64,000 nt of DNA from Neoechinorhynchus agilis (GCA_051530055.1 CM121342.1:8091389-8155388), one strand, 5' to 3'; counted from the stretch's first letter, positions 5-44,895 are shown. Made by a program: numbers and translations. The notes: a model not told the origin generated them from the letters alone.

Positions 5-3000
5 TTGTTGGCTATAATGAGAGAGGTTGGTAAGAACACCACACCGGATGGCACCATTTGTACGGATACGTTCAAAGTGATCTACATTGCACCAATGCGT
101 TCTCTTGTACAAGAGATGGTTGGTAATTTCAGTCGTCGATTGGCGTGCTATGGTCTTAAAGTTTCTGAACTGACAGGAGATCATCAACTCACAAAGCAGG
201 AGATTGACGCGACTCAGGTGATCGTGTGTACGCCCGAAAAATGGGATATTGTTACTCGCAAAGGAGGTGATAGAGTCTACACTCAAATCGTTCGACTTTT
301 AATTATCGACGAAATTCATTTGCTGCATGATGATCGCGGACCGGTGTTGGAGGCGATTGTCGCGCGGACCTTAAGGAATATTGAAAGCAATCAAATGGAT
401 GCGCGTTTCATTGGACTTAGTGCTACACTTCCCAATGTCGAAGATATTGCTCGGTTTTTGCGAGTTAATCCCGATTCAGGACTGTTTTCGTTCGATAACT
501 CGTATAGACCTGTGCCGCTCGAACAACAATATATTGGAATCACAGAGAAGAAAGCTGTTAAAAGGTATCAGTTGATGAACGATCTCACCTACGAAAAGGT
601 CATTGAACTCAGTGGTTCGACTAAGCAACAAGTACTGATTTTCGTTCATTCGAGGAAAGAAACTACTAGAACGGCTAAATGGATTCGGGACAAGTGTATG
701 TCAGAAAACACAATCGGATCATTTCTACGAGATGGATCTGCCTCCATGGAAATTCTTAAATCCGAAGCTGAGCAAACTTCTAATTTAGATCTTAAAGATT
801 TATTGCCTTATGGTTTTGGAATACATAATGCTGGTCTCAGTCGCGTAAAACCCATCGTGCTCCTTTAAGGGTTTAAATTGCGAACAATTATTGAATTGTT
901 TTAAGCCTTCTTTTTTATAGAAGCTCGATTAGTCTACTTTAAAAACGCTTAAAGGGTAAATCTCTATTTTTAAGTAATGCGAATTCCGATTCAGCCAATC
1001 TTAGTAGAGTCTCAAAAATGGGCGATGGAATTGGCACTAAAATTCAGTCGATTACGGAGATTTCCCAAAAAGGGATATTGTTAATTTTCCAATATCCACA
1101 AATTCCCTAACATTCAAATTTCAAAAAACACGAAGGCAAATGTCATTGAAAGCAAGTTACTCTTCAGTAGGTCTATTTTTTACAAGAAAAAAGTTTCTTG
1201 CTTTATATTTTTATAGAGGCGAAAGTTGATTTTTTTTTCAAAAAAAAATTAAAAACGCTTTGTCGCGCTTCTGTTTCTAATGTTAAAAGGAGCACGGATT
1301 GGGCAATAGATCGAACACTGGTTGAGGACTTATTTGCGGATCGACACATTAACGTCCTTGTATCTACAGCAACCCTTGCTTGGGGTGTTAACTTACCCGC
1401 TCATGCGGTTATCATTAAAGGAACTCAAGTGTATAGCCCCGAACGTGGTCGATGGGTGGAACTCGGTGCATTGGATGTGATGCAGATGTTGGGTCGAGCC
1501 GGTCGCCCCCAATTCGACCGTCGTGGAGTAGGTGTCCTTTTGACCACTTACACTCAACTCCAATACTATTTAAGTCTCATGAACCAACAATTGCCGATTG
1601 AAAGTCAATTGATTGCTCGTTTAGTGGATAATCTAAACGCAGAGTTGGTTCTTGGCACTATTCACAATTCTGACGATGCCGTTCAGTGGCTTAAATATAC
1701 GTATCTCTATATTCGAATGCTGCGCAATCCAGTACTGTATGGAATTGAATTGGACGAAATAGATTCGGATCCGTATCTGGTGAACCGTAGAAAAGACCTC
1801 ATACACACTGCTTGTCTTCATCTAAGCAAATCAGGTCTTCTAAAATACGATCCACGAAACGATCATCTTGATCCAAGTGCTCTGGGACGTATAAGTAGTC
1901 ATTACTATGTAACCGCAGATACAATGCAGGTATACAATCAGCTGCTAAGATCAACTGTATCTGAGATCGAACTTCTTAGGATATTCGCCTTATCGTCAGA
2001 GTTCCGAAATATTCGAGTTAGAGAAGAAGAAAAACTCGAGTTGGCGAAGTTGATCGAAAGGGTTCCATTTCCGGTAAAGGAAGCAGCTGAGGAACCAAGT
2101 GCTAAGGTGAACGTTCTCCTTCAAGCTCATATAAGTCAACTTCATCTCGATGGATTTTCTCTTGCTTCAGACATGATATACGTCACTCAAAGTGCCTCAA
2201 GGCTTGTTCGAGCTTTATTTGAGATTGTTTTGAGCCGGGAATGGGCTCAACTAGCTGAACGGTGTCTAAATCTTGCAAAAATGATCGATCGACGAATGTG
2301 GCAATCAATGTGTCCACTGAGGCAGTTCAAAAAAATTCCGGAGGAAATTGTTAGGAAATTAGAGAGGAAGATTATACCTTGGGAACGCTTTTACGATATG
2401 GGTCCACATGAACTTGGTGAACTTATCCGAGCGCCAAAACTAGGAAAATCTCTGTATCGATACATTCACGAGATTCCACGTCTTGAGTGCAGTATTCATG
2501 TACTTCCTGTAACACGATCCATGCTTCAAATTGAACTCAGTGTCCGTGCTGATTTTGAGTGGGACGAAAAAGTTCACGGACGTGGAGCAGAATCATTTTG
2601 GGTTTTTGTCGAAGACGTCGACTCTGAACGACTCCTGCATTACGAATATTTTCTATTAAAAGCGAAATACACAAATGAAGAACATCTCATCAAGTTTTAC
2701 GTCAGTGTATATGAACCCGTTCCTCCTCAGTATTTCGTAAAGATAATAAGCGATCGATGGTTGACCGGTCAGCAGGATACAACGGTTGCGATATCATTTC
2801 GCCATCTCATTCTGCCTGAGAAATTCACCCCATGTACCGACCTTCTGGACCTTCGTCCACTTCCAAAGAGCGCATTAGGATGTAAGTGGTTAGAGGAAAG
2901 CTACGATTGGGCATATTTTAATCCCATTCAAACACAAGTTTTCAATACAGTCTACAATACCGACGAAAATGTGTTTGTGGGTGCTCCGGTCGGTTGCGGA

Positions 3001-5451
3001 AAGACCGTTTTGGCGGAAATTGCCATTTATCGTGCTCTGAGCTCTAAAGGAGGAAGATGTGCGTACGTTCACTCTAGACCAGAAATCGTTGCCGCTCGAT
3101 TTGAAGAATTTAAAGAAAGGTTCAAAAACCTTGGGGTCCATGTTGCTAAACTCACTGGTCACTCACAGACGGATTTGAAAGTGATTGCAACTTCTGGATT
3201 GATTGTGAGCACAGCAAATCATTGGGACAGTGTGAGTAAAAGATGGAAACAACGAAAAAGTATTCAAACGTTAAAACTGTTTGTTATTGACGATCTTCAT
3301 TTGGTTGGATTTTCCGATGGTCCTGTAATTGAAGCTATTTGTTCTCGGATGAGATACATTAGTTCTCAAGTTGCCGATAATCAAATGCGAATTCTGGCCT
3401 TAAGTGCCTCCACTGCAAATTTAAGAGACATTTCATCGTGGTTGGCATGCTCAAAGGGCGCATTTAACTTTCATCCAAGCGTTCGGCCTCAACGACTAAA
3501 CATTCGAATTCAAGCGTTCAATCAGTCTCACACGCCTACACGTCTACTCACAATGTCCCGACACGTGTATACGGCCGCTGTTCAATGCGGCCGTGAATCC
3601 GTGATCGTTTTTGTTAGCAGTCGAAGACAAACAAAACTCACTTGTGTTGACATGTTGGCCTATTCCGTTGCCGATGGACAAAATCTTCAATTTTTATCCG
3701 TGGAGAAATCGGAGGATCTTCTTGCTTCAATCGTTGACAAATTGAATGATGAGTATCTCGGAGAATGTTTAAAACATGGAATCGGATACGTTCACGAAGG
3801 AAGCAGTCATACGGATGAACTCATTGTGTTTGACCTTTTCACTTCGGCTATTATAAAAGTACTCGTAGTCACTCAATCGATCTGTTGGCGACTAAATTCA
3901 CTTCATAGTTACATGGTGATCTTGAGTGACACCTCGTTCTATAATGGCCAATCGCATTCCTACGAGGACTATCCAATGTGTGACATCCTCGAAATGTGCG
4001 GTCGAGCAACCCACGACGCTCTCGTACTCACAGAACGGTCAAAAGCTGAATACCTCCAGAAATTCCTATACGATCCATTACCAATAGAATCACATTTGAC
4101 GTCAGCGGCAGCGACTCAAGGCATTCACGATCATTTTAACGCAGAAATCGTTGCTCATACAATTGAGAGTAAACAGGACGCTGTCGATTACCTTACATGG
4201 ACTCTCATGTACCGAAGGATGACTCAAAATCCAAATTATTACAATTTAGCTGGTCTTACTCATCGACACCTTAGTGATCACTTGTCGCAACTCGTCGAAA
4301 GTGTCCTCAGTGACCTTGCCGAATGCAAATGCATCCAAGTAGACGAATTCACGTGCTCTCCATTGAACCTTGCAATGATATGTTCATATTATAGCGTCTC
4401 ATATCGCACAATTGAACTTTTATCGCGTACCTTAAGTCCGAAAACTAAAAGCAGTCGAACGTTGCTTGAACTTGTTTCCAACGCTGCCGAATTCGACGAT
4501 CGCCTTCCAGTACGCCATCGTGAAGATGTCATTCTTAAACAACTCACTCAAAGGCTACCTGAGACTTACACACCACCTAAAAATACCAATGATCCGATCC
4601 ATCTTAAAGCTCATGCACTCATATACGGATATTTGGCACGACTACAACTACCGGCAGAACTTGAACGAGACGCCGATTTCGTTATTGCACTTGGCGCAAA
4701 ACTTCTTCATGCTTCCGTTGATGTTCTTAGTTCGAGTGGATACTTGACATCAGCTTTAGTCGCCATGGAAACCGTACAGATGATCGTACAAGCAGTTTGG
4801 CCGGGATCAGGCGATTCAGGAGTCCTGAGACAAATTCCTCATTTCAATGAGGAAATAGTGGACAAATGTAGAGGAAAAGGCGTGTTTAGTGTATTTGATC
4901 TCATGGAAATGGACGACGACGAAAGGTTAAAGCTTTTACAAGAAAGTCTTAGACCTCGGCAGGTGTCAGACGTGGCTCGTTTTTGTAATGCGTATCCGAA
5001 CGTGGATTTCGGTATCATTGTCAAGTCCGTGAGTTCACAGGGAGATGTTGTCAGTGAGCTAAAGGTAGAAAGCGATGAAGACGAAGACGGAGTTGTAGAA
5101 TGTATGGACGATGGGAGTGTTTGCGTGGAAGCGACACTCGAGCGGGAGCAAGATGACGAAGGTGAGCAGTTGGTGGTTGCTCCTTTCTTCCCAAATGAAC
5201 TAAAGGATGAAGGATGGTGGCTTATTGTGGGACATCCACATTCTAATCGTCTTCTAGCCATCAGAAGAGTTTCCATGGGAAACAAAAGTCAAGTCAGAGT
5301 TCAATTGGATGTAGCTAACCCGTTGACACATGAAGATGGGTCACAAAATGAAACGGCGCAACTTAAAGTGTATCTCATGTCCGATTCTTATTTGGGATGC
5401 GATCAGGAACACAAATTTAAAGTAACCAAAAGAAACCTCGCTAAAATTTGA
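5..5451 (+). CDS. SNRNP200: U5 snRNP 200-kDa helicase BRR2, 5'-partial; exons <5-847 and 1309-5451
   Basis: Tandem Ski2-like helicase cassettes and Sec63 domains ([43 protein letters not shown], second cassette [10 protein letters not shown]). The join 847/1309 gives [15 protein letters not shown], the conserved BRR2 text. Confidence 0.97.
848..1308 (+). other. Non-GT-AG intervening sequence in BRR2 (461 nt)
   Basis: cgc gTA|aaacccatcgtgctcctttaa...ttaaaaggagcacggattgggcaaTA|gat cga. TA at 846-847 and 1307-1308; inverted arms 851-868 and 1283-1303. Confidence 0.85.
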
Positions 5452-5560
5452 TTGTTCTAGCAAAAGAGTGCGCGTGAGTAACTCGAAAGTTGTAAAATCG
5501 ATTTTGTGTCAAAGACTGCCAAAATACCGATTTGTCCAATTTGCGATCATGTCTGCTTTG

Positions 5561-5692
5561 GTGACGTCATTCTTCCTTTTCATATTCTGACTGGAAAATG
5601 CGTCTAAATTTGTCGAATAGTGACGTCATTCTTCCATATTGGTGCAGTTCTGCCTGGAAAATGCGTCTAAATTTGTCGAATAGTGACGTCAT
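5561..5692. promoter_or_regulatory. ~60-bp tandem duplication carrying three TGACGTCA (CRE/ATF-type) palindromes upstream of RNASEH2C
   Basis: TGACGTCA at 5562, 5621 and 5684; repeated ctggaaaatgcgtctaaatttgtcgaatagtgacgtcat. Function is inferred. Confidence 0.5.
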
Positions 5693-5866
5693 CCTTTCGT
5701 TCATATTTACGAAAACGCCACGTTCTATGACATCGGCTGCGATTTGTACTTTCGGCCTGATACATTCGAAAAAAGTTCGTAGTTTGCTGATTTATTCTCT
5801 CTTACAAGTTTAAGGTGGCTTTTAAATGAGAAGCGCTTAAAGTATGCTAAAAAATCTTTTTAGAAA

Positions 5867-6252
5867 ATGAAAGATAGCAAAGTGCATTTTCTTCCCTGTC
5901 ACATCGACTACAATGGTTCTACTGAAGTGGACGAGTTATTTTCGAGTAAAATAAAAGCTGGGGATGAAACTGAAGACGGTATCATGGAAGTGAATGAAGT
6001 CGGAGCGCCTAAGAGTTTCGCCTCTTCTAAAATCTTAGAAGCATTGACTATAACACATTCCGTGGGCGTCCGTTGGTTGGACGGCAATTGGCGTTACCCG
6101 AAGGTTGGACCGGTGTATTTATAGAGGAAGATTCAATGGAAGTAATATCCAAATTCAGCGAGTTCACTTATTGGAAATTAGACGAGAAAACAACGAACAA
6201 GGACCACTTCGTCAAGATTATTGAGTTTTTGAACAAACAAAACCAAAGCTGA
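5867..6252 (+). CDS. RNASEH2C: Ribonuclease H2 subunit C; exons 5867-5992 and 6055-6252
   Basis: VHFLPCHIDYNG at the N-terminus. A second frame reads TFRGRPLVGRQLALPEGWTGV...FSEFTYWKLD, matching the RNase H2C pattern (LPC..DG / SFRGR.L.G...LP.G / F...TYW). Confidence 0.88.
5993..6054 (+). other. Non-GT-AG 62-nt intron (AA...AC) in RNASEH2C
   Basis: gaa gtg|aatgaagtc...gactataac|aca ttc cgt gives GIMEV-TFRGR. The only nearby AGs need a phase-2 donor that would delete ~20 N-terminal residues. Confidence 0.7.
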
Positions 6253-6921: not shown

Positions 6922-9900
6922 TTAGACGTGTCTGGACATGCTACGGCGATCTCCATTGCTCAACACGGACAATTCTCTATCAGTGGGTCTCGTGATATAA
7001 TTAAACCTGCTAGCAGCTCGATACTTGCTGATCATGGCTTCAGCAGCTTCTAATCGTTGCTCAGCTCTTAGAAGGTCATCAGCCATGACTTTATATCTCG
7101 CCAGACTATGTGCAGCTTCTTGTTCGGCGCTATCAGCCTGTTTTCTGTAAACCTTCATCTTTTGCTGAAGATTCTCATTCAGCTCTTTGAGTTTCTCATT
7201 TTGATTTTCGATCACATCGGCCTGTGTATTTGGACGCTAAGCTTATAAACTTTAAAAAAAGATTACCTGCGTTAGAACTTCTCTCATTTTTCGCTCCATA
7301 CGCCCAGTCGCACGATTCGCATCGTCCACTTGATGGTTCAACAATTGAATGTTATTATCTCTCTCAAGTAAACGGTCTTCAAGGTTCTGGATGGTCGCTT
7401 TAAAATTCCTAAAAGCCGTGCTCTCCGCCATTTCAGCCCTATTCTCCGCTTCTCCCAATTCTCTCCTCATTATACTCATGTCGGCGTCGAGTTCCTTCAA
7501 ATGCTTTTGCTCGAGATTAAGCTTTTCGTTCAGGGAATTGTTTTCAGAAGAAAGTTTCGTGCACCGTTCTTCTAAGACGTGCAATTCGGACAGTGTACCT
7601 TCGTGGTCCACCTGAAGTCGTGCCAACGCCCCATCCGAATGAGCCTTCTGATTTTCCAATATCCGTAAATGGGACACGAGTTCATTCCGAGCGACTGTGA
7701 CTTTGTTTAATTCTAGTTGAAGATTATCAATCGCCTTTTCGTACAATAAGGCGTTTTCCTTTAACCGATCTACTTCCCCAATTAACGCTCTGTTCCGCTT
7801 GGATGCCAAAGCTTCTAAGTCACGAGTTTTGTCATGTTCACGCCGTTCATCGTCCAACTGGTTTCGTAGATCCGATACTGTGCCATGAAGAGCATCCGCT
7901 TGGAGTTTCAAATCAGAAACAAGCTGCTGTTCTAATTCGAGCTCGTGGCGAATAGTGTCACATGCTGCTAAAGCGTTCTCTTTTTGAGTTAAAGCTTCAC
8001 GTTTCGCCATAACCTCGGCTTCCACGTTCGCTTGCATCATTTCCAGCATCCTTTGTGAATTTTTCTTTGTTGATTCAATATCTTCCTGGAGATCTCTTAA
8101 GGCCATTTCGTATTCGTTTTTCATGTTGTCCAAATCGTTTAAAGAACCCTTCAAACGAATTTCATATTCGTCTTTTTCCATCATACAATCGTCGATCTTC
8201 AACTTTAATTCGCCCTTCTCCTTCTCCAGTCGCTGTTTCATTTTCTCAAATTCAAAAACGCTTGTTGCGTTTTCTTCTACTTGCTCAATCAAATTCCGAA
8301 CTTCATCAGACAAATTCCGATTCTCGCGCCTTAAAGATTCAATCTGGTCCTGGGCTTCCATATACTGATCCTGTTTTTTCTGAGCTTCGGAACTCATGTA
8401 TTTGGCGTTGTTTTGAGCACCTGCCAACTCCAAAGACACACTTTCACACTTTTGTTTCCATTCCTCAATTAATCGATCGAATCTCTTTTGTTTCCTTTCC
8501 AAATTTCCAATGGTTGTATTCGCTTTATCCACAGTGCCAATCAATTCTTCAACCTCTTGCTATAAATGCGCGCACGCACACTTTTAAGGGCTTCAAAAAT
8601 TCTCCAAATACCTGCAGCTTCTCTTTTGACCGTTGTAAAAGAACACTCTTATTCGCTGATTGCTCAATCTGGTCTTCAGCCTCGACCAAACGAGTTTCGT
8701 ACTTGCTTCTAGTTTCCTCCATTTCACGCATACGCTCAAATCGTTCATTCTCGTATTTTTTCCTTAATTGTTCGATCTAATTAACAAGAGATACAAACAT
8801 GAGAAGGTTTTTTCTTGAGCAAAAACTAACCGCATTATTTGCGCATACCAACTCCTTCTCGAATTCTCCGCGATTCTCCAATTCAATTTCCAACTGAGTC
8901 TTCACGGATTCCAACTCAACCACAGCATTTCGTAACTCGGCGGTTAAAGCAACCTTAGCCCGGTCCTCTTCGTTCAACTGATGTCTTGCGTTCTCCAAAT
9001 GATCCTGAAGAAGTTGTTTCGCCTAAAATTTGTGAGATTATATTAAACAATTAGCATTTAGACGTGTGGTTTAATCATAATCCTTCGGATAAAACGTATT
9101 GAAATATTTCGAAAGAGGAACAACTAAAATATCTTTCGAAATATCAGTGAATTCAAAATATTTTATATCCGGTGATCATGATTCGAGAAGGACTTTCGAT
9201 GATTTTGGATTTGTAATGACCTTCAACAACGAACTGATTTGATTACGATACTCTTCAAGGTCCGCATTAACTAAACGCAACTCTCCGTCGATCTTCTTCT
9301 TAGCTGCAGTCTGCTCGTCGAACCTTCGAGTGAGTGTCTCGATTTGCGCATTCGATTCCTCCAGATTCGCTTCCATTTGAGCGTTCAACGCACTCAGCTT
9401 CTCGCGCTCTTTCTCCATTTGTTCAATAACACCTTCAGCATGAACTAATTTATAACCAAGTTCATGAACCTCCTTGTCCAATCTCGCTTTATCGCTGTAT
9501 ATCCCGTCTATTTGCTTTCCCATCTCTTCAACGGCTGCCTGATGTTTCTGTTTCAATTGAGTGATCGTCGTTTCGTGAATCTCCGATAACTCCCGCATAT
9601 CAAATCGTAACTTTTCTAGTTCGCCTTCTCGTTTCCGAGTTATGTCACCGTGTGTAGCGTTCATTCGCTGACTCTCTTGTACAAAGCTGCTTTGCTTTTT
9701 AAATATAATTTTTGCCATTAATTTTGATGTGTCTTCGACGGGGAAAAGATACTTCTTTTTCTTAGTTTTGTTAACCCGAGGATTTAAATTCACTGATTTA
9801 TTTCAAGTCGGATTATTCTTACATTTTCCCGTGGATTCTCATTGTTGAAGTGTTTAATCCGAACATCGGAAATAAATCAGTGAATTTGGTGGCAAAACTA

Positions 9901-11178
9901 AGAAAAAGAAAACAAATTTTAATCTTCAACTTTTTATTCTTTTTCTATTTCAATTAACTCAAATGACATTGTAAAATTAAGTCTGAAGCGGACGCAAGAA
10001 TTTTAGATTTACTCAAATTTTAATAATCTTCCTGAAATTTAAATCATTTTTACACTTTTCAGTTAGGTTCAAATCGAGAGAGAAATCCAATTGTTTATTA
10101 GTAAGACACAATTTTAGAATTACTTATTGCGATATTTTTCTATTAATTTTATTAATCACTGGCCCACTATAGAGGTGAATGTAATCTTACAGGAAGAAAT
10201 AGACTGCTGAAACTATGCGGAAATTTTTCTTGTTTGCTTATTTCACAGATCAGTCGATCGTTATTTCCTGAAATTTAAATGATAAAATTGTTACCAATAC
10301 GCGAAACAAATTCGAATTCCCGAGAAGCAATGCTGCTTGTTTAAATTTTCATCCAATTCTCTTATTTCAATCTCATTTTCAGTATTCTTGCGTTCAATCT
10401 ACACAAATCATAACAATCTTTTCGGTCAAAAACAGTAAAAAACTCACCTTTAATCTCAATTCTTTTTCCGTATCTAAGCGTTGCTCGAGATTTTCATATT
10501 CAGACTAAACCCGAGAAGAACTCGAGATTTGAGCTAAAATGTTTCGCTCACCTGCAAATCAGAATATCGTCTGTGCATATTTGAAAGTCCGATGGATTTT
10601 TCTTCTACAATTTCTTTAAGGCTGTTTATATTTTCGTCTTTATGTTTAATTTTGTTCTCAAGTTCAACGCGTCGTTTCTCAAAGTCTTCTCGTTCACTTT
10701 CAATTGAACGTATTTCAAGTTCAAACTTTCGGTTGTTTTTAGTCGCAATACTCAACTGTCTTTTCTCATTTAAAAGATTGTCCTCTAAGTCGTTGATTGT
10801 CTGTTCAAGTTTAATCCTTTGTTGAACAAGCATGGAGTTCTTGTTTTGTTCGTTTACAAGGTCACTTCTAAGACTCGTGCACTCGGTTTCAATAGTTCGG
10901 CGCTCGGATTTAAGTCGTTGGACGGAATCAGAATTATCGGTCATCTCCCGTTTTACATCACTCAGAAGCTGATCACGTTGATTGAGTTGTCTCTGCAATG
11001 CCCTAATCTTCTCTTCCAACTCTTCAACCGTTCCATTTAGAGTTTCAATCTCAGAATAAAGTTCTGACTGCTGCCGTCGTTCCCCTTGAATTGAACGGTC
11101 ATCTTCGATTGTGCTCGTGTGCTCATCGCTGTATTCCTCTTCCATATCGTGTGCCAAACGAACAGTGTTTTCCTCCAT
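6922..11178 (-). CDS. Myosin heavy chain rod-like coiled-coil protein without a motor domain (~1050 aa, 8 exons)
   Basis: Heptad sequence colinear with the myosin II S2/LMM tail (TRKREGELEKLRFD, LERKQKRFDRLIEEWKQK, LQQKMKVYRKQADSAE). Six GT-AG introns plus one non-canonical insert; presumed start MEENTV at 11178. Confidence 0.8.
9680..10341 (-). other. Non-GT-AG intervening sequence in the myosin-rod gene (662 nt)
   Basis: Minus strand aat tTA|aacaagcagcattgct...agcaaagcagctttgTA|caa gag. Arms at 10326-10338 and 9684-9696 (11/13). Confidence 0.8.
9786..9887. mobile_element. ~100-bp MITE-like foldback inside the myosin non-canonical insert
   Basis: Perfect 19-bp inverted repeat aaattcactgatttatttc / gaaataaatcagtgaattt, plus inner tcggatta / taatccga. 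Confidence 0.65.
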
Positions 11179-11355: not shown

Positions 11356-13028
11356 TTAGTTTGGAACTATCAGTTGCCAATCGGTCGGCATATTTCCTTC
11401 AAGAACACCTAAAGCACATCCAAATCCCTGGATCACGCTCATCGGATACCCAATGTCGCATAAGTACGATTGGGAGCATACTTTACCCAATCGAAAAACA
11501 ATCACACCTGATTTATCGTGCAATTGGAAATTCTTGGCTGATGAATACAACACTCGATTCCCATACCTAAGAATAAACGCGTTGTTGTCCCATATAGGCG
11601 CAACCGTTTCCAACAATAATGTCCGAGGTGGAACTGACTTGATTTTGTCCCTTAATTCCACTTTATCCGTAAACATCAACTTATATTCACCTCTTGATCT
11701 TAACTCGGATTTGAACCGGCGCCCATTCTGGTCAATGGCCGGTATTAGTACTCGCGTTGACCAAAATCGACCATACATCAGCGAATTCTCGTCGTGAGTT
11801 ATACTGGCCTGCTGAACCTCGGTCCCTGAAGGTTCCATCACGTAAAGACCGGTCAGTCGCCACGTCATGTTCGGCTTAAGCCAACCGATTAATCGTTATT
11901 GAACACTTTCAGACAATTAGGACCTACGGAAAAAATTTGATTTTTCGAAAGGATTTCTCTTAACCGGTGAAGGTGTAATGCGCCACACGACTAATTGTTT
12001 CGAATCAGTTGGCTGTGTGAACTCTTCACCGGTTAAAAAATGCTTTCGAAAATTCGAATTTCCCCCAATCCCGTAGGCTTTTAGTGCATTTCATCGCTAC
12101 TTAATCGAATTTAGACAAATTTTCAAATATAAACTGGTTTTTAGAGTTTTTATAAGAGTTCACACAGCCCACCGATTCGAAACAATTAGCCGTATGGCGC
12201 ATTATCACTTCACCGGTTAAGAGAAATCCTTTCGAAAAATCGAAAATTTATTGTTTTTAAATAGAATAAATTCTGTGATTTCGAATCGGTTGACTGTGTG
12301 AACGCTTATAAAAACTCTAAAAAACCCAACAAGCCACACGTATGAATTTTCCGTTGAAGGGTTAAATTTTTGATCTAAATTCGATCTCAAAACTAATCGT
12401 TACGGACATTGATTTAAATAGCAATGATTTTTTAATTTTATTTAAGAATTTGCGTATATCAAACATTCGGCTTACTATAAGCGAGTTATAAAATGAAATT
12501 GTTGCCATTTCATACTAATGTTCAATAATTTCTGCTTACATATTTCGTATCAAACTCCATTAGTGAATCGTGTGAGTTCTCCGATATACAAATCTTAATC
12601 GCGCCCGAAACTGCATAACGTGTAGCCAACAACAAAGGATCCTTTTTATCCAAATCATCGCTTCGATAGAGGTAATAATGGGAGCCTAAACCCGATTTAG
12701 ATCGATGAATCACAAAGTTCACACAGTTTCCCTTGTTATTAAGAGGTTCGGTTACATCGAGATATCGATTGCTTAATTCCTTCTTTACAGCGAACGGATT
12801 ATTTGTTGAGAATAAAGGTCGACTTCGTCCATCAACGTTCGATTTGAACCTTAGTTTCTTCAATGCCTCGTCTAAGCTCGATTTAATTATACTCTTTTTT
12901 CTGCCAACATTGCTTTTGTGTTGTTCTTGTTCAAGAAACTGAGGTAGCGATATTCTTCGTGAATTGAGTGACTGTTGCTTGAACGCATCCTTAAAAATGA
13001 TTTCGCTATCGCTTTCGTTTTTTCTCAT
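11356..13028 (-). CDS. Tubby-domain (TULP-like) protein, 2 coding exons
   Basis: HYYLYRSDD..PLLLATR, P.WDNNAFILRYGNRV...SAKNFQL, FRLGKV..SYLCDIGYPMSVIQGFGCAL match the tubby C-terminal domain. Confidence 0.85.
11890..12536 (-). other. Non-canonical intervening sequence in the tubby-like gene (~647-650 nt)
   Basis: tat gTA agcagaaattattgaaca...tgttcaataacgatTA atc ggt tgg. Perfect 10-bp inverted repeat; no in-frame AG between the stop and IGWLKPN. Confidence 0.75.
11936..12245. mobile_element. Foldback/MITE with ~90-bp inverted arms inside the tubby insert
   Basis: 11941-12026 is nearly the reverse complement of 12154-12239; a partial third arm lies at ~12279-12328. Confidence 0.75.
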
Positions 13029-14174
13029 CGTTTTTTATGAATGTAACCCCAACTGAACAAAAACCTAAGATGAATGCAGAATCCATGAACACATTCATCG
13101 TTGACTCAGTCCTTTGAACTCGGTCGTGATTTTTACCAGAAGTGAATCAAAGTTTTCTTTTTTAAGGAGACTTACGTTGCTCAAAAGTAATCTCGGTGAA
13201 ATTCAAGCGACGGATAAGCCTTTTTCTCTGTTAAGCAAAATAGTATTCAATCAAACTCAGTCCGAATGAGACGTTCTTAAATTGTAAAATTTTGAACTGC
13301 AAATTCACACACTGAAAAAATTAGAAATAGTTTTAAAGTTATCCAATGAGCTTCAAAAAGTTTTGTTTGATAGATATTCTGATTGATTGTCTTAGCTTGC
13401 AAAGTATCAAAAACCAAGCAGAAACGCAGGGCTATATTATTCGTAAATCGAATAAAAAACATGTTCAATAACGTGTCCTTGTTCGTATTTGAATCCATGA
13501 ATATCGTCGTGTTCAATGGTTCTTTTTTATGTCCATCAATTTTCAGTTACAATTGAGGTTGAGGACGGCGAATGGTTATGTTTATATCTTCAAACAATGA
13601 ATTAGTGAAATTCTGAAAATCTAGTGCATTTTAGTGTTAAAAATTGTTCTGACAAATATTCATTTGTACGGTAAATCAACCAGCAATGCCAAAATCTATG
13701 AAATATCTTGTTCTTTTCGATTATCGGAACAGAAATAGTAGGCTAAAAATTATAATCTTTCTAATAGTTGTCTAAGAACTTTCAGCACATTATCAAATAT
13801 TTAGGTAAAAGACAATTATGAAGAGTGCAACGGTTTCGATAAATAAAAACGTTTTATTGCATCCATAAATCATTTTTAGGGGTTTGATTCTGATTTATTA
13901 TGTTTTATAATTTAATATTCGCTTTTTAAGAATACAGAAAAGTACATTTGAGTGATCTAAGATTATGGCACAAAAATTCGCCTTTTTAAGAAACCATAAA
14001 AAGAATTGGCCTGCAAAAAGATTACGGCATCTAAGATCATTTTTAAGGAACTGAGAAGAGTGGACACTTTTAAAATAAGTCAAAAATCCATTCAACAACG
14101 CGAATGCTTTAAAATTGTGAGAATTTCATTCGGTTTTTCCTGTCGACTTAATCTACAAAAATTCGTCTAAAAAT

Positions 14175-17100: not shown

Positions 17101-17329
17101 TTACGTTAAATGAGTAATTGCGCTCATCTCAAAAGTAAATTAGCGCGATGGCAGAGCTCAGAAGGGGTATTGGGTAGCCTGATCAGCTTTAATCCCAGCT
17201 CCAATGTGCTCTAAGGAACCAATATGGCAAATCACGAAACCTCAATCAATTAGATCATTACTAATAATATGTGTATGCGCGTGCCTGATTGTAAGGATAA
17301 TAATAATAACACAAACGCCCTTCGAAAAC

Positions 17330-19260: not shown

Positions 19261-19272
19261 CTTACAAGCAAA

Positions 19273-29900: not shown

Positions 29901-32900
29901 GAATTGGCTTTCCTCAACATTGACATCTTCACGGATTGAAAGGTTATATCCGAGTAATCCATTGATGAGACTATCGTCAGCTACGAATCGGATATCTGCA
30001 ACTTCTTCAAGTCTTGCCTCGAACAATATTTTCTCTAATCGTCCAGGGACAAACATTGGTCTAATGTTCGGATCTGTTTGCTTCGGATTATCGGGTTTTG
30101 TAAAAGAAGTTCTCGCTACCAATATAATCGAATTGTGATTAGAGGGATTATGGCGAGTGACTGCAATTGTATCATTGGTCACTTGATCGACGTATATCTG
30201 CAAGTAGAAGGTTGTCGAAGGCGATTTTATGAAAGAGAATGGTGTGCCAACCTGGGAAAAGTTGGTTTGAGCCATGTGATAATGAAGCTTGTTCGCAATT
30301 ATACGAGCGGCAATAATTCCCGTTGACTGTGCCACAAAACTCTGATCGATGCATGCGCTCGGTTTCCATTTCCGATAAAAACGATTCTCGGTTACTACAT
30401 CGAGCTAAAAACGACAATTATGCATATTTCATAGAGGCATTTTTCGTCAAAGCTCGTAAATAAAACTTTAAAACATGTAAAGTGCTCGGTTTTATTCTGA
30501 AACTTAATCTAACGAGTGTCAGTATTCCGTAATTGCAAAATGTTTTAGCTAATCAAAAAATCGACATTATAAATTTCTTATTGATTTTCATCCGATTAGA
30601 AAAAGCTATTTGTTTAGCCATTGAATATCGCTTTTAAAAAAGACTAATTTTCTCACATAGACTTCGGATATAAACCTACTGAGCTGGCCAAAACTATTAA
30701 CTTACATTATGTGGAACAAGTTCATCGAATCCTCGTGAGCTGCCAGTAGAGCAACAGACCATATTGCTCAAAAACATCCTAGGTAACATATCATAGATTG
30801 ATCTGACTTTTATTGGACTCATATTATCATGAGTCACATCATAAAACATTGCATTGGCAATTCGTGGAATGAGTGGACGCACTGGCGGTTGATAGAAAGC
30901 TCCAACTGGATCGCCGCCGTATCTGTGGATGTATCCACCGAGCTCATATGCACTACCAGCACCCATTGATTCTAAGCTTTTTGCTTCAGAGCTAAGAAAA
31001 AAGAATAAAATTACCTCTGACGAGTGATGTTATACCAATTTTATTGACAAACTGATTATCGATTTGTTCACTTCCAGTGAAGAGCTCAGCGAAGATATAC
31101 ACGTTTGGTCGTTGTTCTCTCGCAATGTCCATCATATACTCAGCGACGTGTAGAGGAGTCGAATGGCAATTATCCAGGCGAACCGCATGAAATACATCGA
31201 CGGTATCTCGAGTGTACTGCTCCATATACGACCAGAGTTCAGGGCAGTCTTCTGGCTTTTTCCCAAATCTTGTCTTCACCAAATCCGTCCAGATCACTAA
31301 CTCTCGACGAAGATACGACCGGGAACCTATAGAGCTGAGTTAGTCGAGATTTCCCAACAGAAATATTGAACCTTCTTCAGCAAACAGATTGGTGTCGACG
31401 CCACCTCCAATCAACCATCCATTGAAAGCCATAATCTGGCAGCATTTTTGAGAATCAAAACAAATCATCTCAGCTTCCTCAACACTTATACCATCCCATG
31501 GAAACGTAAAGTATCGAGGAGCAAGCGGAGTCGCTTCACTCAGTCGCGAATACATGTTTGAGTCGAAAAACCAATACTTGGCATTTCCAATACACGCATT
31601 TACTCCATTGACAACGTCGTCCGTTATTCGATCACGAGCCTCGTTATTTAAACGATCCAAATGCTCACGAAGAAGCTCACATGATCGCCGAATTTTGTCT
31701 TCGCGGTACACTCGATCGTGCCTGTTTTTTCCAGGAATGAAGTGAGAAAAAACGTTTTAAACGAACCAATCAACATCCAGCAAATCGGTGGCGAGATCTA
31801 GATCGATCCACGATCCAAAACGTTTATATTCAGGGTCTTGGTACAATTTTAAATCTTCGAGACCTTGAAAACTTTCATTCGGTTTTAAAGTCTTCACTTC
31901 TATTATGAATGTAATCATAAAAACGTCATTTTGCCGCTCGACTTACCATGTAATCTTGAATTGAGCTCACCAACAATCACATCAACATTCGCCATGACAA
32001 ACTCGTGGAATCGATATCGCGGCAAAACTTCATGAAGAAGATAGTTTCGTATTCTCTAAAAAAATGCCTGCTTTAAAAAATGCTATTATTGCAGTATAAA
32101 ATCGGATATTTTCAAGTAATCCTCTAAGGTCGACAAGTGTATGAACCAGTTGAAAAATAGCCAAATCTATCTGAGAGAAATCGTTTAAAAAGCTTAACAG
32201 GTGTTTAGATACAAAAAACGTTCTGTCTTCAGCGAAACGGTCGAGTGTGTTTCAGAAAACATGAATCCTGGACGGTTCGATCTATCTGACCAAGTAATAT
32301 GGGTTCCAATCACAGCAGAGAATGAATTCCGACGACGATAAAACACAATTTGAAAATGTAATAAAAAAAGTCGTCAAAGCATCGGCATGGTGGGATACCT
32401 CGAGGTGATATGGCTCGATCCGATCAGGAATTCCCTTATTGTTCAACTTTCCGTTCGCCACATCCAGGGTGAATTGATAAATTATGTAGTCGAAAACAAA
32501 AGCTGGTCTGAGGTACGGAGAGTTTTGAAGATTGTAGCTAGCAGATGGATATTTTTTAAGAAGCGGACAATCAACAGCGACATGATTGTAGACAAGATCA
32601 GAAACAGAGATTAGTTGATGCTCTTCGTATAATTTGGCAATAAATTCAACCAACTGTTTCTTGGTGACATTTCCAAACACTGGATTAAAGGTAAGATGAT
32701 CTCGAATAGCATAAGATGAATTTGAGATTTTGCATAGTTCTTGGAGAGGTGTAATATGGACCATATTGAATCCGGATTTAACGGTTACCATGATTCGATC
32801 TAGCCATTCGTCAAAACGACCTAAGCATTTTGCTAACAGGGTCTGACATTGGAGACCGTTTTTTGAAATCGGTTGACCGTCGTATGAGTTTAAAATGGGA

Positions 32901-37788: not shown

Positions 37789-37989
37789 TGAACATAATCC
37801 TGGTTCAAGATTCCTTTATTATTAAATATTTCACGGGGAAACCTCCCCTCATTGGTCATTGTAAATTGTTTCGAGATAAAATTGAAAGTAATAAAGCTGT
37901 TTTTCACAGTGAGAGTTCTTTAGCGATGAGTTTTCCTCTTTCGATATATTTCATAATAATGCAGGAATCTTGAACCGAGATTATGTTCA
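37789..37989. mobile_element. ~200-bp intergenic MITE-like element
   Basis: tgaacataatcctggttcaagattcct ... aggaatcttgaaccgagattatgttca (25/27 inverted match). Confidence 0.75.
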
Positions 37990-38349
37990 CCGCCATCCAA
38001 AGCAATAAATATCATAAAACGACTGTACATTGTAACAAAATGCAAAAAGTTTAACGATAGATTTCTTGTCTTGGATTATTATCTCCCGAGAAAAGATTGC
38101 GAAAAAGGTACATAGCTTGATCATTTTTCAATACTTCAAAACAATGACAAACCATGGGAAAATGTCGGAATTATGTGCAATATCGGAAATTAATTGGTCA
38201 ATTTAAATTCGGGAGGGGTGGTATAACTAAGAAAAGGAAAACATAGATTAATTAAAAGCTCCTCAGTTCAGGACGAATCAACGCCATAATTTTAAGCGGG
38301 TTATTTTCCAAATAATATTTGAATAGTTAAAGAGAAAATCCATGAGTAT

Positions 38350-38441
38350 GTGGAAGTGGGGAAATTACATATCCAAGAATCACTTGGACGAAATATTTCA
38401 ATTAAAGTCAGTCTTTGATATGTAATTTTTCCCACTTGCAC
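38350..38441. repeat. Short foldback hairpin
   Basis: gtggggaaattacatatc / gatatgtaatttttcccac. Confidence 0.55.
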
Positions 38442-38560
38442 AAATATTCCAATATCATAAAGGATCGTCTAAGATTCAATTTCGTGTCAATATAAAGCGA
38501 AAAAACCCACAATTTCATAGCGTAAAATCCAAAACACTAAAGGCGACGTCCGTGCGGTGT

Positions 38561-38959: not shown

Positions 38960-41900
38960 ATGGGTAACATGCTTAAAATACGTGAGTTTATATGAATTTA
39001 TTTCAGTTTTTTTTTGTATTTGATGGCTAATAGCTGAAAAATACCAATCGATTTTCATGGCAAATATGTCTCAGTTTAATAAAGTTCAAGAAACTGTGAT
39101 GGAAAAAGTATTTTAGAATTTTTTTAAAGCTCACTTTATAGTTCAATATATTTAGGCGTTTTTTAGTTCGGATTCTATTGTCGTTTGCGCGCCGACGGGT
39201 TCGGGAAAGACGACTATATTCGAAATGGCAATCGTACGAATGCTTATGGATAATAATGACGATCCAAGTGGATGTTGTTGTCTCTATTGTGAGTTTTTGT
39301 TCAAAAATAGGCAACTTTCGACATTATTGTTCGTTTTGCCATAGTGGCACCAACCAAATCCTTGTGCCATGAACGATTTACCGATTGGACAAGACGCTTT
39401 TCATCGCCGCCTTTTAATTTGTTGACCAATCAAATAACCGGCGATTCCAACGAATCGGATCTTGTTGGTCTTGATCGATCAAATCTTATTTTCTCAACTC
39501 CGGTTGGACTTTCCCTTTTCGGTTGTTTTAACTCATTTCTTTTGAAGGAAAAGTGGGATTCTCTTACTAGAAGATTCAGTAAATCAAATCCTTTAAATCA
39601 AAGATTGAAACTGGTCATGATTGATGAAATTCATATTATTAGTGATAAGGAAAGAGGACCGACCTTAGAAGCGGTCGTAACTCGAATGAAGGTTCATTTG
39701 CCTCATTTAAGGCTTGTTGGAGTATCGGCTACGATTCCTAACGGCGATGATGTGAGTTGTGCAATTTTTTAATTGCTCTTTAAAAACTATACATTTCTTC
39801 AAATAATTTCGATCCCTTAACGACCTTTTAAGTGTGCTATTTTCTCAAACAAATTGCATACTTCTTTATTTTCAGATTTATTACAAATTGGACCTTTTAA
39901 AGTTCAACTCACATAGTCAGGTTTTGTTTCTTATAATTATGGATTTTTTCCCTATAAATTGGACTAATCATTTTGCATTTTGACCAAACTCTTCAACTGT
40001 GATCGGGATTTACAAAATTAAACGAATTTTAAGCAAACTAAAGAAAAACCTTCAGTGTGTATTGTAAAATTCAACTCAGATAATCAAGTTTTGTTTCTTA
40101 TAATTATGGATTTTTGGTACAAATTTGACTAATCATTTTGCGTTTAACAATGATAAAAAGTTGCTATTATTGAACAATACTACGGATTTGAGTGATTCGC
40201 GCTGCATGTAGATGCTGCGATCTGTTTCATATTTTCAGGAAGTTCCCTGGACGGAATTATCCTCACCTAGTTTGGTATTTCTTTAGTTAGCTTTTTAGAG
40301 CAATGAGAATTTGCATAAAATAACAACTAATTTTTTTTAAACTAATCCCTTTGTTTCCTTTAAAGATCTCCAGTTGGTTTCGAACCTGTCGCCGACCGTC
40401 GATCTCATTTACGTTCGATCAATCATACCGACCAGTTAAACTAAAGACAATTGTTCTTGAGTTCTACAGCTCACCTACATGGACAAACTTTCGATTCGAC
40501 ATTAGTCTCAACTATAAACTCAGCACTGTGATTCGGACATATTGTTCCGGCCGATCGACTCTTGTGTTTTGTGGAACCAGGAAAGGAACCATACAGGCGG
40601 CTTCTGTACTCGCCTCGAATTTTCCAGTTCTAAGCAAATTCAGTCAGCTTGCTTTAAATAAAAGGTTCCATGATTTAAAACTTAAAGGTACACACTTTTA
40701 CTCTAACTTTTCATCGGTTGTTTTTATACTAATAAGAACTCATGTCCCATGGAATTGCATATCATCACGCGGGATTAGACTTGGAGGATAGAGTGGCCAT
40801 TGAAGAAATGTTCAAAAATGGAGATATATTCGTTTTATGTGCGTTGGTTTTAGTTGCGTCTTAAATGCACTATATAAGTCTCGATTTTAGTCGCCACATC
40901 CACTCTCGCGATGGGTGTCAATTTGCCCGCAAGTGCGGTTATAATAAAGTCGACTTCTTATTACAGCGAAGGAACTCATTGCGACTACAATAGCAGTCAA
41001 TTGCTTCAAATGATCGGTCGAGCTGGTAGACCGCAGGTGACTTCTCTTTTTTCAAAGGGAATAATGTAGCTTTATGTGAGTAGTTTGGCGAAACCGAAGC
41101 CATTGTTATCATCATGACGAAGACGGGCAGTCAAGGAAAATACATTAAATTATTGAACGGATCTGAGACTGTTGAGAGCAGGTAATTAAAATCGTCGAGG
41201 GGCTTGAAACCGAGAGTCGGAAAAGGAATTAATCAACTTTTCACAGAATGCCTAAATTTCTAAAATGCACCTTTGCGTCCATTTAATATATCTTATTATA
41301 CATTTAGCCGATTTTAATCCCTTTTTCGACGCCCGGGTCTTTTTTAGGCAGTTTCGGTGAGCTAACCGTATAGTTTCTTCAGCAAAAAAACAGATTTTTT
41401 GTCTTAAACTTCCTTTCCACAACAGCAATATAAAGCAAAAAATCATCATTTCGTTCTCAAATATTTCGCAAGCGAATTCTAATTGACGTAGTGATTGAAA
41501 TAAGCAAATTTAACTTGGTAAAATCGATAAACACTTTGGAAGTATTATTTAAAGTCTTTACCCGGTAAATACTTTTTTTATTAAATACGTTTCGAACACG
41601 GTCGGGTTCATCATCAGTCTGTTAGTTATTGAAATAAAAAATTATTTACCGGTGAAGACCTAAATAATGCTTCCAATCATATACCGCGGTACGTCTTCAC
41701 ATATCAACATTTAGATAAGCACTTTGATTTTCTTTGTTTCGAACCCAAAGTGATTAAAGTAAATTAACAACTACATTCATTTTTTTATCTCGAGCAGTTT
41801 TTGTTGCCTGTTTTTTGGTTCTTGTAGACAGATATAAATTTTTAAACAGCTCTAGCAATTGCCTTTTACAAACTGAGATGTTTCGAGATCCGCAAAGACT

Positions 41901-44895
41901 TAATAGAAAATAATTTCCAAACTATTACTCATTTGATTCGAATAGCCTTCATTCCCGACTGATTGAGCACGTGAATGCGGAGATCGTGTTGGGAACAATT
42001 AGAGATTTCTCAGATGGCACAAGTTGGATTCGATCGACATTCATGTTTGTTCGTATGTCAAAAGAACCAAAAAAGTATAAAGGTACATTGGGTTCTTTCT
42101 AAACTTCCAAATATAGATGTTGCCCGTTTAGAAGTCTTAAAGTGTATAATAGATATAGACGACGGAGGCGAGGACAAATTTGTGGATAAATTGTTCTTAA
42201 AGTGTCTTGAGCAACTCACAAGTGCGAATATGGTTATTTACAATGAAGATGGGTTATGTTTTCAATCCTCACGTACGTTCATTTGTGATCGATGCCATTT
42301 AATGCAATTCTACGCGTAGAACTTGGAATGATCATGTCGAAATACTGCGTTAGTTTTGTGACAATGAAGCATTTGTTGAAACTTTCTTACAGTACCAAAA
42401 TGTCCGACCTGGTGCGTATTCGAGTTTTCCTTTAATAACGGTCTCATCTGTATAGTTTAGCTTATGGAAATATGCAAAAGTTCTGAAATCGTTTCCGATA
42501 TTGTTGTTAGAACAAATGAGAAATGTGTACTGAACGCGTTTCATCCTGACAACAGAGCTCAAAAGAATAAGAACAATGAGAATAATTCAAGTTCTTACAA
42601 CGTTTTTGTAGTCTTTGTTGACGTTTTATTTAGATGGAGATTCTGAATGCACTCAGAAACATGTTCGATTTAAATTAAAAGCAAAAATCAAAACAAGTGA
42701 CATGAAATGCTATACGTACGTTTTTAATTTATGTGCTATACCGATCAAACTTGCGGTTGTATTAAAGTCTCGCAAATTTCAGACAATCGTTAAATTGTGC
42801 CATAATCCGTTCCCCTTTTTAGTTAAAATAATCGCTGATAATTTTTTGAAGTTCTTAATTTCGCGTCTCCCAGCTAACCCACTGCGCAAATTGATAAAAT
42901 CGATCACTAATAGCATTTTCATAGTCTGTAAATGATCTTAATTCTCATTTAGATTAATTCAAGTGTGCCTCGGTTGTCTGCCCCTAAACGATTTTGCACT
43001 AAATCAAGAAACAATGCGTATAATGCGTGTTGCAAACCGATTACTAACAGGTTAGTTCGCTATAATTTCAGATTTGACCGTATTGAACGTTCCTTAGCTT
43101 TATACGAAACAGTTGTGATCCGACACAATCACGAACTCGACAATGAAAAAACTAGACAGTCTGGCAAGCTCATTTTGAACACTTGTTTGTTGTTAAAATC
43201 AGTAAGACTCAAAGTCTGGTACGACAGCCATCACGTCCTTAAGCAGTTTCCTGGAATTGGTGATTTTTAAGCTTTTTAAACCGTTTTCTCATTTATACTT
43301 TAATTAATTAGGACAAGCAATATCGAATGCCTTTGTTAATGTCGGCATTCACACACTTGAGACATTTTCAAATCTCGATCCACTTCGAATTGACATGGTT
43401 TGATATGTTTATGTTTTTCTTTATCGTTGATTTTGAAAAGATTGCATCGAGGCACTCTCCGTTCGGTCATTCTCTTCTAAATCAAGTTCGATCACTTCCT
43501 AAACTAAGTATTTCCTTTCAAACACAGGTAAAAAATTACACTATACTCTGACTAATTTGAAACTAAAGGAACTCAAACAAACGCTAAAAATCGTAATCAC
43601 TTTATCTAATGTCGAAAACGTATCTCATAACTCTCAAGTGCGAAACCACACATTCGTAGTTCTCGTTATTTCCTCCGATACGTCTAAACTTTGGTTTCTG
43701 CGATGTCTCAGGATATGCAACATGCTTCCTTCCGGCACTTATACAATCTATGTGGATAATTCTGGGATGGGTGGTGCCATCAGTGCAATGTTGATCAATT
43801 TAAACTTGAGTACGATTGCGTTTACTGTGATCTTGTTTCAGTGTCTGTTTAAGTTGGCATGGATGCTAGTGCTAATCTGAATCTCCCACCAATTTATGAT
43901 GAAATTGAGGATTTACTCGAAGAAAAGTGTACGGATGATCAATCTTGCCAGAGAACAAAACTTTCTAGGAAAGGTTGGTCGAGATGCAGTTTGTTAAAAA
44001 AATCCTTATTTCCTTCATTGTTTGACTATCAAATGTTGATCGCTCTTAACACTCGATATCGATTATTGGAGTATTTATTCTCCAGTCTTCAAATAATGGA
44101 CTGGGAAGCTTTTCGTGTGTTAAATTACGCTCCACATTTGACTGAAAACTGATAAAACGACCAATGCTAGTGGATCGCTTTCTATACCTTTTGGCACAAA
44201 TCGCTTGAGTCTAATTAATTCTTTAATTCAGAAAAACCCGATACGAAGAAAACTGAAAAGGTCACGATTGATCATTATTTACAATCGGCTATAAGTTCTG
44301 CCGATATGAATTACTATTTTGACCATTCAGTAAGTTTTGCTATTTTGTCCCATTTTTATACTATGAATAACATTAGCTCGCCTGGGACGAAATCAAAGTG
44401 GGAGAAAGTAAAGAAGCCATGGAAGTAACTGACAAATCATTATTTGATTTGTTTGATGAACAAAGTAGTGAAAAAAATATGATCGAGCTGGATACAATAA
44501 GTCCGGATACCGGATACATGAGTAATCGAGATGATATTAACGATGAAGATTTAGTCAAGTACGCCAAAGAATTGGATATTCCTCCTTTAAATAGTGACGA
44601 CGACCTTTTCGGCGCTTTCGATGACCAAACCAATATTCCAATAGTCATGCCGAATGACAGGAAATGTAACCAGGCAGCTTTCCATTCTGCCCGTTTTGAG
44701 GATAATGTATTAAATGAAAGGACAAAAAGTGTACAAAAAACAATCGATAGTTTTGATATCGGCAACTTTGGAGTTCAACAGCGTTCACTTACTGCCAATA
44801 GCGGAAACTTTCTGAACGACAAAAGCAATGCTGTTCAAGATGAATTCTCCCAAATGTTTCTGTCTTTATATGGTTCTGAATTTAAGTTTGAATGA
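38960..44895 (+). CDS. HFM1: Meiotic helicase HFM1/MER3 (~22 exons; C-terminal exon linkage less certain)
   Basis: [96 protein letters not shown]. Confidence 0.9.
41537..41700 (-). mobile_element. Second copy of the hammerhead-core foldback repeat, in an HFM1 intron
   Basis: Minus strand CTGATGA-T-GAAC-ccgaccgt-GTTC-GAAA-CG-TA (41617-41586), enclosed by inverted arms similar to 19300-19560. Confidence 0.7.
44028..44142 (+). other. Candidate non-canonical AT...AC intervening sequence near the HFM1 3' end (115 nt)
   Basis: gac t|atcaaatgttgatcgctcttaacactcga...tcgtgtgttaaattacgctccacatttgac|tg aaa. ~30-bp imperfect inverted repeat; removal links two otherwise unconnected open frames. No homology check was possible. 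Confidence 0.45.

Follow-up and report, generated by a model that had tools for sequence, protein, structure and literature searches.

Within the 64-kb stretch of DNA analyzed here (the window, with positions counted from its first nucleotide), the coding sequences of BRR2, a headless myosin-rod gene, tubby, COG3 (at two sites) and AGL are broken by six interruptions of 330-662 nt. All six carry TA at both ends, on the diagonal set by homolog spacing, and excision of the insert plus one TA keeps the reading frame in every case, with homolog spacing exact in five and one residue long in tubby. [quoted passage not shown] We consider removal from RNA the most likely way in which the host would tolerate them, and give it slightly better than an even chance.

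Insert boundaries and restored proteins

The original prediction for this DNA described six TA-flanked inserts of 330-662 nt with inverted repeats 2-8 nt inside their ends, and analysis of junctions and terminal inverted repeats (TIRs) agreed with it exactly. The inserts are given below; coordinates denote the removed segment, that is, the insert plus its 3' TA.

848-1308, plus strand, 461 nt removed: BRR2 insert (459 nt); 5' TA 846-847; arms 851-866 (CCCATCGTGCTCCTTT) and 1286-1302 (AAAGGAGCACGGATTGG)
9680-10341, minus strand, 662 nt removed: myosin-rod insert (660 nt); 5' TA 10343-10342; arms 10338-10325 and 9697-9684; internal palindrome 9753-9910
11890-12536, minus strand, 647 nt removed: tubby insert (645 nt); 5' TA 12538-12537; arms 12528-12519 (TTATTGAACA) and 11905-11896; nested long hairpins 11930-12323
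22249-22611, plus strand, 363 nt removed: COG3 insert 1 (361 nt); 5' TA 22247-22248; arms 22255-22265 (GAATGACGACT) and 22593-22603
23056-23385, plus strand, 330 nt removed: COG3 insert 2 (328 nt); 5' TA 23054-23055, repeat extending to TTAA; arms 23058-23074 and 23365-23381
28131-28764, minus strand, 634 nt removed: AGL insert (632 nt); 5' TA 28766-28765, 3' TA 28132-28131; arms 28757-28747 (TCTATGGTTCA) and 28147-28137 (TGAACCATAGA)

The BRR2 frame closes 6 codons past position 847 and reopens at 1309; joining the two gives HNAGLSRV/DRTLVEDLF (slash, junction), a spacing identical in about 100 homologs. The myosin-rod TA junction yields ELDENLQESQRMNATHGDITRKRE, with the spacing of tarantula myosin 3jbh residues 1151-1159. 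In two local alignments to solved myosins, query L247 falls on residue 1151 and A330 on 1159, and the 7-residue gap between them corresponds to the QESQRMN of the TA junction. Tubby offers a single in-frame TA pair, whose product DTKYVIGWLKPN runs one residue over homolog length. At COG3 site 1 the junction reads ICDALVKIIRPLIVKTKCIETL (in a longer stretch, ICDALVKIIRPLI) and aligns without gaps to 36 homologs; at site 2, tgtt[TA]...caaat[TA]aca gives CLTSLQMAAVKIS, identical in spacing to the homologs (CIQSLLKASDVI). The AGL product, ILADRVAL/MYPTDES, has the IL-to-YP spacing of the listed homologs (ILSDKVSRLYP), of which 74 out of 79 agree in the span from WWW to YPxDD. Neither a stop nor a frameshift occurs in about 11 kb of checked coding sequence around the inserts, and the inserts themselves are closed in all three frames by 5-20 stops per frame.

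On the homolog-spacing diagonal, no junction has a direct repeat of at least 2 nt other than TA. The repeat is longer in three cases (TAA, TTAA, TAG), an extension at chance level. TA accounts for 6.7% of dinucleotides, so that by a rough estimate each site has about a 4% chance of a TA/TA pair within a few positions of the right junction; such a pair was seen at six sites. Each of the six 5' TAs forms positions 2-3 of a codon (GTA, TTA, GTA, ATA, TTA, TTA), as do 37% of TAs in the checked coding sequence (P = 0.003), so that every insert falls exactly between codons.

Every in-frame, stop-free junction at most 36 nt from each boundary was then scored with homolog-built profiles. The TA junction ranked 1/746 in BRR2, 1/856 in AGL, 3/998 at COG3 site 2 and 10/501 at COG3 site 1, a weakly informative region where the models ranked above it lose four more residues. 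The removed length was the same across all top models for BRR2, COG3 site 2 and AGL. The best GT/GC-AG alternative scored below the TA junction by 15 bits in BRR2, 6 at COG3 site 1, 16 at COG3 site 2 and 11 in AGL, and such alternatives either drop invariant residues (GLSRV in BRR2, VIGWLK in tubby, the C..LYD block in COG3) or add unmatched ones. For the myosin rod, Pfam Myosin_tail_1 gave 68.6 bits in one stretch with the TA junction versus 66.4 with the sole GC-AG pair of equal length; for tubby, Pfam Tub gave 74.7 bits in one stretch versus 68.9 in two for the only GT-AG pair, which loses VIGWLK. An in-frame GT-AG intron at COG3 site 2 (23084-23326; GTAATT...TTTAG) would leave 29 extra residues that occur in 0/36 homologs. 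The claim that these junctions are not GT-AG thus held, no GT/GC-AG pair reproducing the homolog protein.

Several other candidates were rejected. A second AGL TA pair (28777/28140), 11 nt upstream, gives a protein one residue short and a weak TIR, and 28766/28132 was chosen by homolog count. In AGL, an apparent 55-nt insert flanked by TA (32098..32043) proved spurious, the region being accounted for by a canonical GT-AG intron at 32398-32056. For a small exon, NNDRLICEISKQEK, within the myosin insert there is no room in the solved-structure alignment, and joining at the 7-nt direct repeat AAGCAGC near the ends of that insert shifts the frame. When TA pairs with TIRs and open frames were sought generically, AT-rich sequence and satellite produced thousands of matches, which made the scan uninformative.

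Terminal inverted repeats and insert content

Inverted-repeat arms of 10-17 nt were present in 6/6 inserts, their starts lying 2-8 nt inward of the TAs, with almost symmetric offsets at the 5' and 3' ends (3/4 in BRR2, 3/2 in myosin, 8/4 in tubby, 6/6 and 2/2 at COG3 sites 1 and 2, 7/4 in AGL). Against a null of 6000 random TA pairs spaced 330-662 nt, TIR scores of 9-12 had p values of 0.0002-0.012 each: 12 for BRR2 (p = 0.0002), 11 for AGL (0.001), 10 for myosin and for tubby (0.005 each) and 9 for both COG3 inserts (0.012 each), with a Fisher combined p of 2.7e-10. Minimum free energy folds paired the first and last 45 nt of all six inserts through 11-22 base pairs, the most (22) in AGL. Four long GT-AG introns of the same genes (301, 614, 764 and 237 nt) had TIR scores of 4-5, equal to background, and 0-4 end-to-end pairs. 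Two kinds of long interruption therefore coexist, GT-AG introns without end pairing and TA...TA inserts with it.

The TIRs are imperfect and of six different sequences. Insert ends read TA-AAAC, TA-AACA, TA-AGCA, TA-TTTT, TA-AATT and TA-GGTT; at the 5' sites TA is followed by A, A, A, T, A and G, and at the 3' sites by G, C, A, A, A and A. The six showed no similarity to one another or to the rest of the window, where a second copy of any insert was not found. Long hairpins are nested within two of them: in tubby, 11930-12323 has 96-nt arms that are 90% complementary, and in myosin a palindrome spans 9753-9910. The only Rfam matches of these hairpins were sub-threshold, to plant MITE-derived microRNA hairpin models. 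The original prediction had taken the inserts to be transposon-born, and the TA duplication, the TIRs, the lack of coding capacity and the nested hairpins all agree with that origin.

Other hairpin structures lie elsewhere in the window. Two elements, at 19251-19583, beside a retrotransposon remnant, and at 41536-41711, inside the 764-nt GT-AG intron of HFM1, are 78-80% identical. Further palindromic elements occupy 37789-37989, 38349-38442 and 46530-46619; on both sides, the element at 46530-46619 starts with TA-TA. Hairpin-type elements thus also occupy non-coding DNA.

Gene context and ordinary introns

The window is gene-dense eukaryotic DNA with a G+C content of 31-46%. Its main features are as follows.

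2-5451, plus strand: BRR2, core spliceosome helicase gene
5868-6249, plus strand: RNASEH2C, downstream of BRR2; Pfam RNase_H2_suC, E = 3e-18
about 5993-6054, plus strand: short interruption of RNASEH2C, outside the TA class
about 11180-6925, minus strand: headless myosin-rod gene, ~175 nt after the tubby stop
13037-11359, minus strand: tubby
14-20.5 kb: retrotransposon remnants, with a reverse-transcriptase domain at 18181-18810 (PF00078)
21136-24009, plus strand: COG3
about 33-26.9 kb, minus strand: AGL (glycogen debranching enzyme)
39.2-44.1 kb, plus strand: HFM1
51454-64000: satellite with 27.6 copies of a 454-bp unit (92% identity), continuing past the window end

The affinities of the muscle-type myosin rod, COG3 and AGL identify the host as an animal. 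Compared with solved chains, the rod scored higher with the muscle myosins of tarantula and Drosophila (236 bits) than with human MYH7 (210), which hints weakly that the host may not be a tunicate; protein-search matches of COG3 and AGL were metazoan. Taxonomically the host can be placed as a fast-evolving animal, possibly a protostome. The best identities in the protein collections were 71% for BRR2, 35% for COG3 and 54-56% for AGL. The BRR2 frame comprises 1,663 codons, is 71% identical to homologs and has no other defect. The myosin-rod product begins MEENTVRL and aligns to heavy-chain residues about 914-1928, the motor exons being absent.

Ordinary short GT-AG introns coexist with the minority inserts in the manner originally described: we traced 24 with coordinates, of which 18 measure 34-56 nt, the typical short intron being ~47 nt. 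An AGL intron of 343 nt (32398-32056, minus strand) has a 5' end, GTATCCCA, that partly resembles a U12-type 5' splice site and an ordinary 3' end, TTTTTTTAG. Acceptor-like sites lie immediately 5' of the start codons of COG3 (tttcag/ATG; 21130-21138) and RNASEH2C (ttttag/aaaATG; 5860-5870), the pattern that would be expected of mRNAs carrying a trans-spliced leader; a spliced-leader RNA gene was not found within the window, and a tRNA search gave nothing useful. Short introns together with acceptor-like sites at gene starts would be in keeping with lineages known for intron turnover. A tttttcag acceptor-like site also stands ~20 nt past the tubby stop, ahead of the myosin rod on the same strand, and the arrangement of these two genes looks operon-like. 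Between BRR2 and RNASEH2C, a direct repeat of ~62 nt lies at 5563-5700 and carries three copies of a palindrome, TGACGTCA, resembling a cAMP response element (CRE); these CRE-like palindromes may represent a shared promoter element. The degenerate retroelement at 14100-20600 has many short overlapping open reading frames (ORFs), one reverse-transcriptase domain and a local G+C of up to 0.46, and a 352-bp variant related to the 454-bp satellite lies at 51114-51805.

The list of seven inserts and one weaker candidate in the original prediction also included RNASEH2C and HFM1; the six described above stand, and these two fall outside the TA class. The interruption in RNASEH2C is short and has no TA repeat and no direct repeat >2 nt; a TA junction there would remove 26 nt only and is implausible. 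No GT donor exists in the phase needed by the only usable acceptors, so there is no GT-AG solution. A 32-nt GC-AG intron (6007-6038) leaves 9-10 extra residues and scores 67.0 bits (Pfam RNase_H2_suC), and a 59-62-nt intron with AA/AT...AC/CA ends has homolog-like spacing and scores 70.9 bits; human and mouse RNASEH2C chains have one residue between EV and FRGR. The interruption is best read as a separate, ambiguous short case. HFM1 is canonical: 18 of 18 gaps traced across 39.2-44.1 kb, including those of 614 and 764 nt, resolved as GT-AG with homolog-like protein (17 appear in the coordinate list). Among them, a 45-nt GT-AG intron (39503-39547), in frame and stop-free, sits exactly between the invariant TP and EKWD of a helicase motif, where its retention would insert 15 residues.

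Origin and fate of the inserts

We propose that the inserts would be old insertions of non-autonomous, TA-duplicating DNA transposons of MITE type into the coding sequence of conserved genes, persisting since the host would remove the insert plus one TA precisely, before translation. Removal would act on pre-mRNA, with the inserts behaving as a minority class of non-canonical introns whose TIRs bring the two ends together, and the normal GT-AG system would work alongside on the short introns. Six unrelated, imperfect and partly nested inserts in about 11 kb of lesion-free coding sequence suggest that the insertions are old and harmless, which in turn would require precise removal before translation. 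Consistent with the original view that simple knock-outs are unlikely, six insertions fall in conserved genes within 28 kb. RNA is favored as the level of removal; the only animal precedent is that of the MITE-derived introns of Fritillaria, and euglenids have stem-closed introns that lack a pyrimidine tract.

A number of results weigh against this proposal. Protein searches and two metagenome scans (exact 30-mer and COG3-based) found no transcript, cDNA or close relative, and we infer removal from gene integrity only. GT-AG introns (n = 24) are T-rich on the sense strand, with a mean AT skew of -0.23 and T > A in 22/24. The inserts are strand-symmetric (AT skew -0.09 to +0.08; Mann-Whitney p 0.001 vs GT-AG introns), and their pyrimidine fraction at -22 to -3 is 0.43 versus 0.63 (Mann-Whitney p 0.004). 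No terminal motif common to the six was found beyond TA. With no pyrimidine tract, T bias or end motif, a recognition target for the spliceosome is not evident. The distance from stem to TA varies between 2 and 8 nt, which argues against a simple structure-measured cut, and by-eye reading of the arms found only 2/8 stem mismatches compatible with G-U pairing, hence no sign of selection on the stems at the RNA level. Of the six boundaries, that in tubby is the least secure and may be off by a codon: a GT...TA junction giving a protein shorter by one residue scores 77.9 bits (Pfam Tub). Symmetric ends and missing splicing signals would fit excision from DNA or unprocessed insertions equally well. 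The removal and its RNA level are steps that we infer and so, given no strand-specific signal and a variable stem offset, are the recognition of the stem and the machinery. Of the idea of a second intron class defined by end pairing, the non-GT-AG and transposon-like part is retained; the defining role of the ends is weakened by variable stem offsets, no shared motif and no strand asymmetry.

If the inserts were instead plain insertional alleles, MITEs would have disrupted gene copies whose haplotype is degenerating, heterozygous or does not recombine, or which are redundant paralogs, with intact copies elsewhere or with imprecise rescue by cryptic splicing, as is described for Tc1 in C. elegans. 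The TA target-site duplication (TSD), TIRs, symmetric composition and missing splicing signals are indeed the look of an unprocessed MITE, and the surroundings are repeat-rich (retrotransposon remnants at 14-20.5 kb, hairpin elements, a 12.5-kb satellite of 454-bp units). However, six independent exonic insertions from six unrelated families within 28 kb have left ~11 kb of coding sequence intact. Recent inserts should resemble each other and old ones should come with other lesions, the nested elements and imperfect TIRs suggest age, and neutral insertion does not predict the codon-position bias of all six TAs (P = 0.003); we consider this explanation unlikely. Slightly less probable is that the inserts are germline-limited internal eliminated sequences (IESs), the assembly representing germline DNA from which they are cut at TAs in somatic DNA, so that GT-AG splicing suffices. 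TA at both ends with one copy kept, symmetric inverted repeats, strand-symmetric composition and the lack of a pyrimidine tract speak for it, as do the location of inserts in coding sequence whatever the protein conservation and the restoration of every gene by precise TA-to-TA loss. However, the end consensus of Paramecium IESs (TA-YAG-YNR, or TAYAGYNR), most of which are <150 nt, is absent from all six insert ends, the window contains no excisase gene and no evidence of a germline/soma difference, and a routine whole-animal assembly would be mostly somatic DNA. To our knowledge, intragenic editing of IES type has not been described in an animal.

The two remaining explanations fare worse. 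That these are GT-AG or GC-AG introns with misplaced boundaries, in genes whose proteins differ from homologs by small indels, could appeal to in-frame GT/GC-AG pairs near every insert, among them the equal-length GC-AG pair in myosin and the good-looking in-frame GTAATT...TTTAG of COG3 site 2. Such solutions lose invariant residues or gain 29 unmatched ones, fall short by 6-16 bits (by 2-6 bits in the Pfam scores of myosin and tubby) and leave unexplained the TA repeats and TIRs that set the six apart from the tested long GT-AG introns, making this account highly improbable. We give next to no credence to self-splicing or ribozyme inserts (group I/II, hammerhead-type) or to assembly artefacts: insert ends are closed as hairpins, but no group I/II intron or ribozyme family matched in an Rfam scan of 1-46 kb even at E <= 5, and six artefactual joins would not each produce a TA duplication, symmetric TIRs and a length that restores the frame.

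A broader and more tentative possibility, which we rate well short of an even chance, is that this animal precisely removes TA-bounded, hairpin-ended relics within essential genes without conventional splice-site recognition, either by stem-guided excision from RNA of the euglenid kind or by ciliate-like germline/soma elimination of DNA, under a TA-only rule independent of that of Fritillaria. If removal is precise, transposon insertions would become tolerated gene interruptions directly, without gaining GT-AG signals. The window would then capture an early stage, missing from Fritillaria, in which normal introns still outnumber the new class. Questions of intron origin would become testable, such as how little boundary information is sufficient and whether a terminal stem can substitute for splice-site dinucleotides, as would the question of whether a relaxed spliceosome, a separate RNA pathway or DNA editing evolved in an animal. 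Standard gene finders would truncate or mis-join the genes that carry inserts, BRR2 included.

Comparison with known systems

Paramecium IESs derive from Tc1/mariner elements and are removed from DNA in the ciliate macronucleus. The inserts resemble them in TA boundaries with one copy kept, interruption of coding sequence, origin from TA-targeting transposons and an ORF restored upon (here, predicted) removal; they differ in lacking the TAYAGYNR consensus, in their length of 330-662 nt and in their animal host. Stowaway and Tc1/mariner MITEs share the TA duplication, TIRs, a size <700 nt, the lack of an ORF and hairpin potential. Their TIRs start at the terminus, whereas those seen here start 2-8 nt inside TA, without a terminal motif of a family and without a second copy of any insert in the window. 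None of the six 5' ends resembles the /RTATCCTT 5' splice site of U12-type (AT-AC) introns, and an introner-type arrangement, with GT and AG supplied by element and TSD, finds no GT/GC-AG pair that yields the homolog protein at the six inserts.

Transposon-derived non-canonical introns with TSDs and TIRs are known from Fritillaria borealis, Amoebophrya and euglenids (PMC11282704, PMC13326754). The introner-like elements of Amoebophrya have variable repeats of 3-5 nt and are multi-copy, with strain-specific conserved TIR motifs, in a group (dinoflagellates) described as without U1 (PMC7789003 as summarised in PMC11282704). Direct repeats, TIRs and non-canonical borders are common ground, whereas here the repeat is TA in every case and the six TIRs bear no relation to each other. 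Euglenid nonconventional introns are stem-closed, lack a pyrimidine tract and occur alongside conventional introns (PMC11282704). The inserts share with them variable borders, possible pyrimidine/purine cut sites (T/A), a stem a few nucleotides inside the ends, no pyrimidine tract, TSD-like repeats and coexistence with conventional introns. The Euglena code, 5'-N3CDG...CH'GN5-6/R, places CAG/CTG at +4..+6 and -8..-6 (PMC12501133). In the inserts CDG/CHG is absent at these positions, BRR2, for instance, reading CCC in one register and ACC in another at +4 to +6, and the host is an animal.

The non-canonical introns of Fritillaria borealis carry a TAC (YAY) repeat, with AG/AC and AG/AT as the predominating termini (Henriet et al. 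2019; Soo et al. 2026, PMC13326754; PMC11282704). Non-canonical introns make up ~95% of all introns there, and their removal by the U2 spliceosome has been demonstrated (PMC13326754, PMC11282704). Points of likeness are a compact animal genome, non-conserved positions, non-GT-AG termini, border inverted repeats with a TSD-like repeat and a probable transposon origin. Here, however, the repeat is TA only, the third base matching in 3/6 and being a pyrimidine in 1/6 at each end; the inserts do not follow an AG start rule, and in any given register AG...AC or AG...AT occurs in at most one of them. The class is a minority (6-7 versus at least 24 GT-AG introns), and its removal is a prediction. The analogies with Fritillaria and euglenids drawn in the original prediction therefore hold as resemblance and do not extend to the Fritillaria borealis rule (TAC/AG...TAC/) or the Euglena code. 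Collectively, the inserts appear to be transposon-derived non-canonical gene interruptions; following the defining boundary rule of neither system, they are nonetheless most like the cases in Fritillaria and the euglenids.

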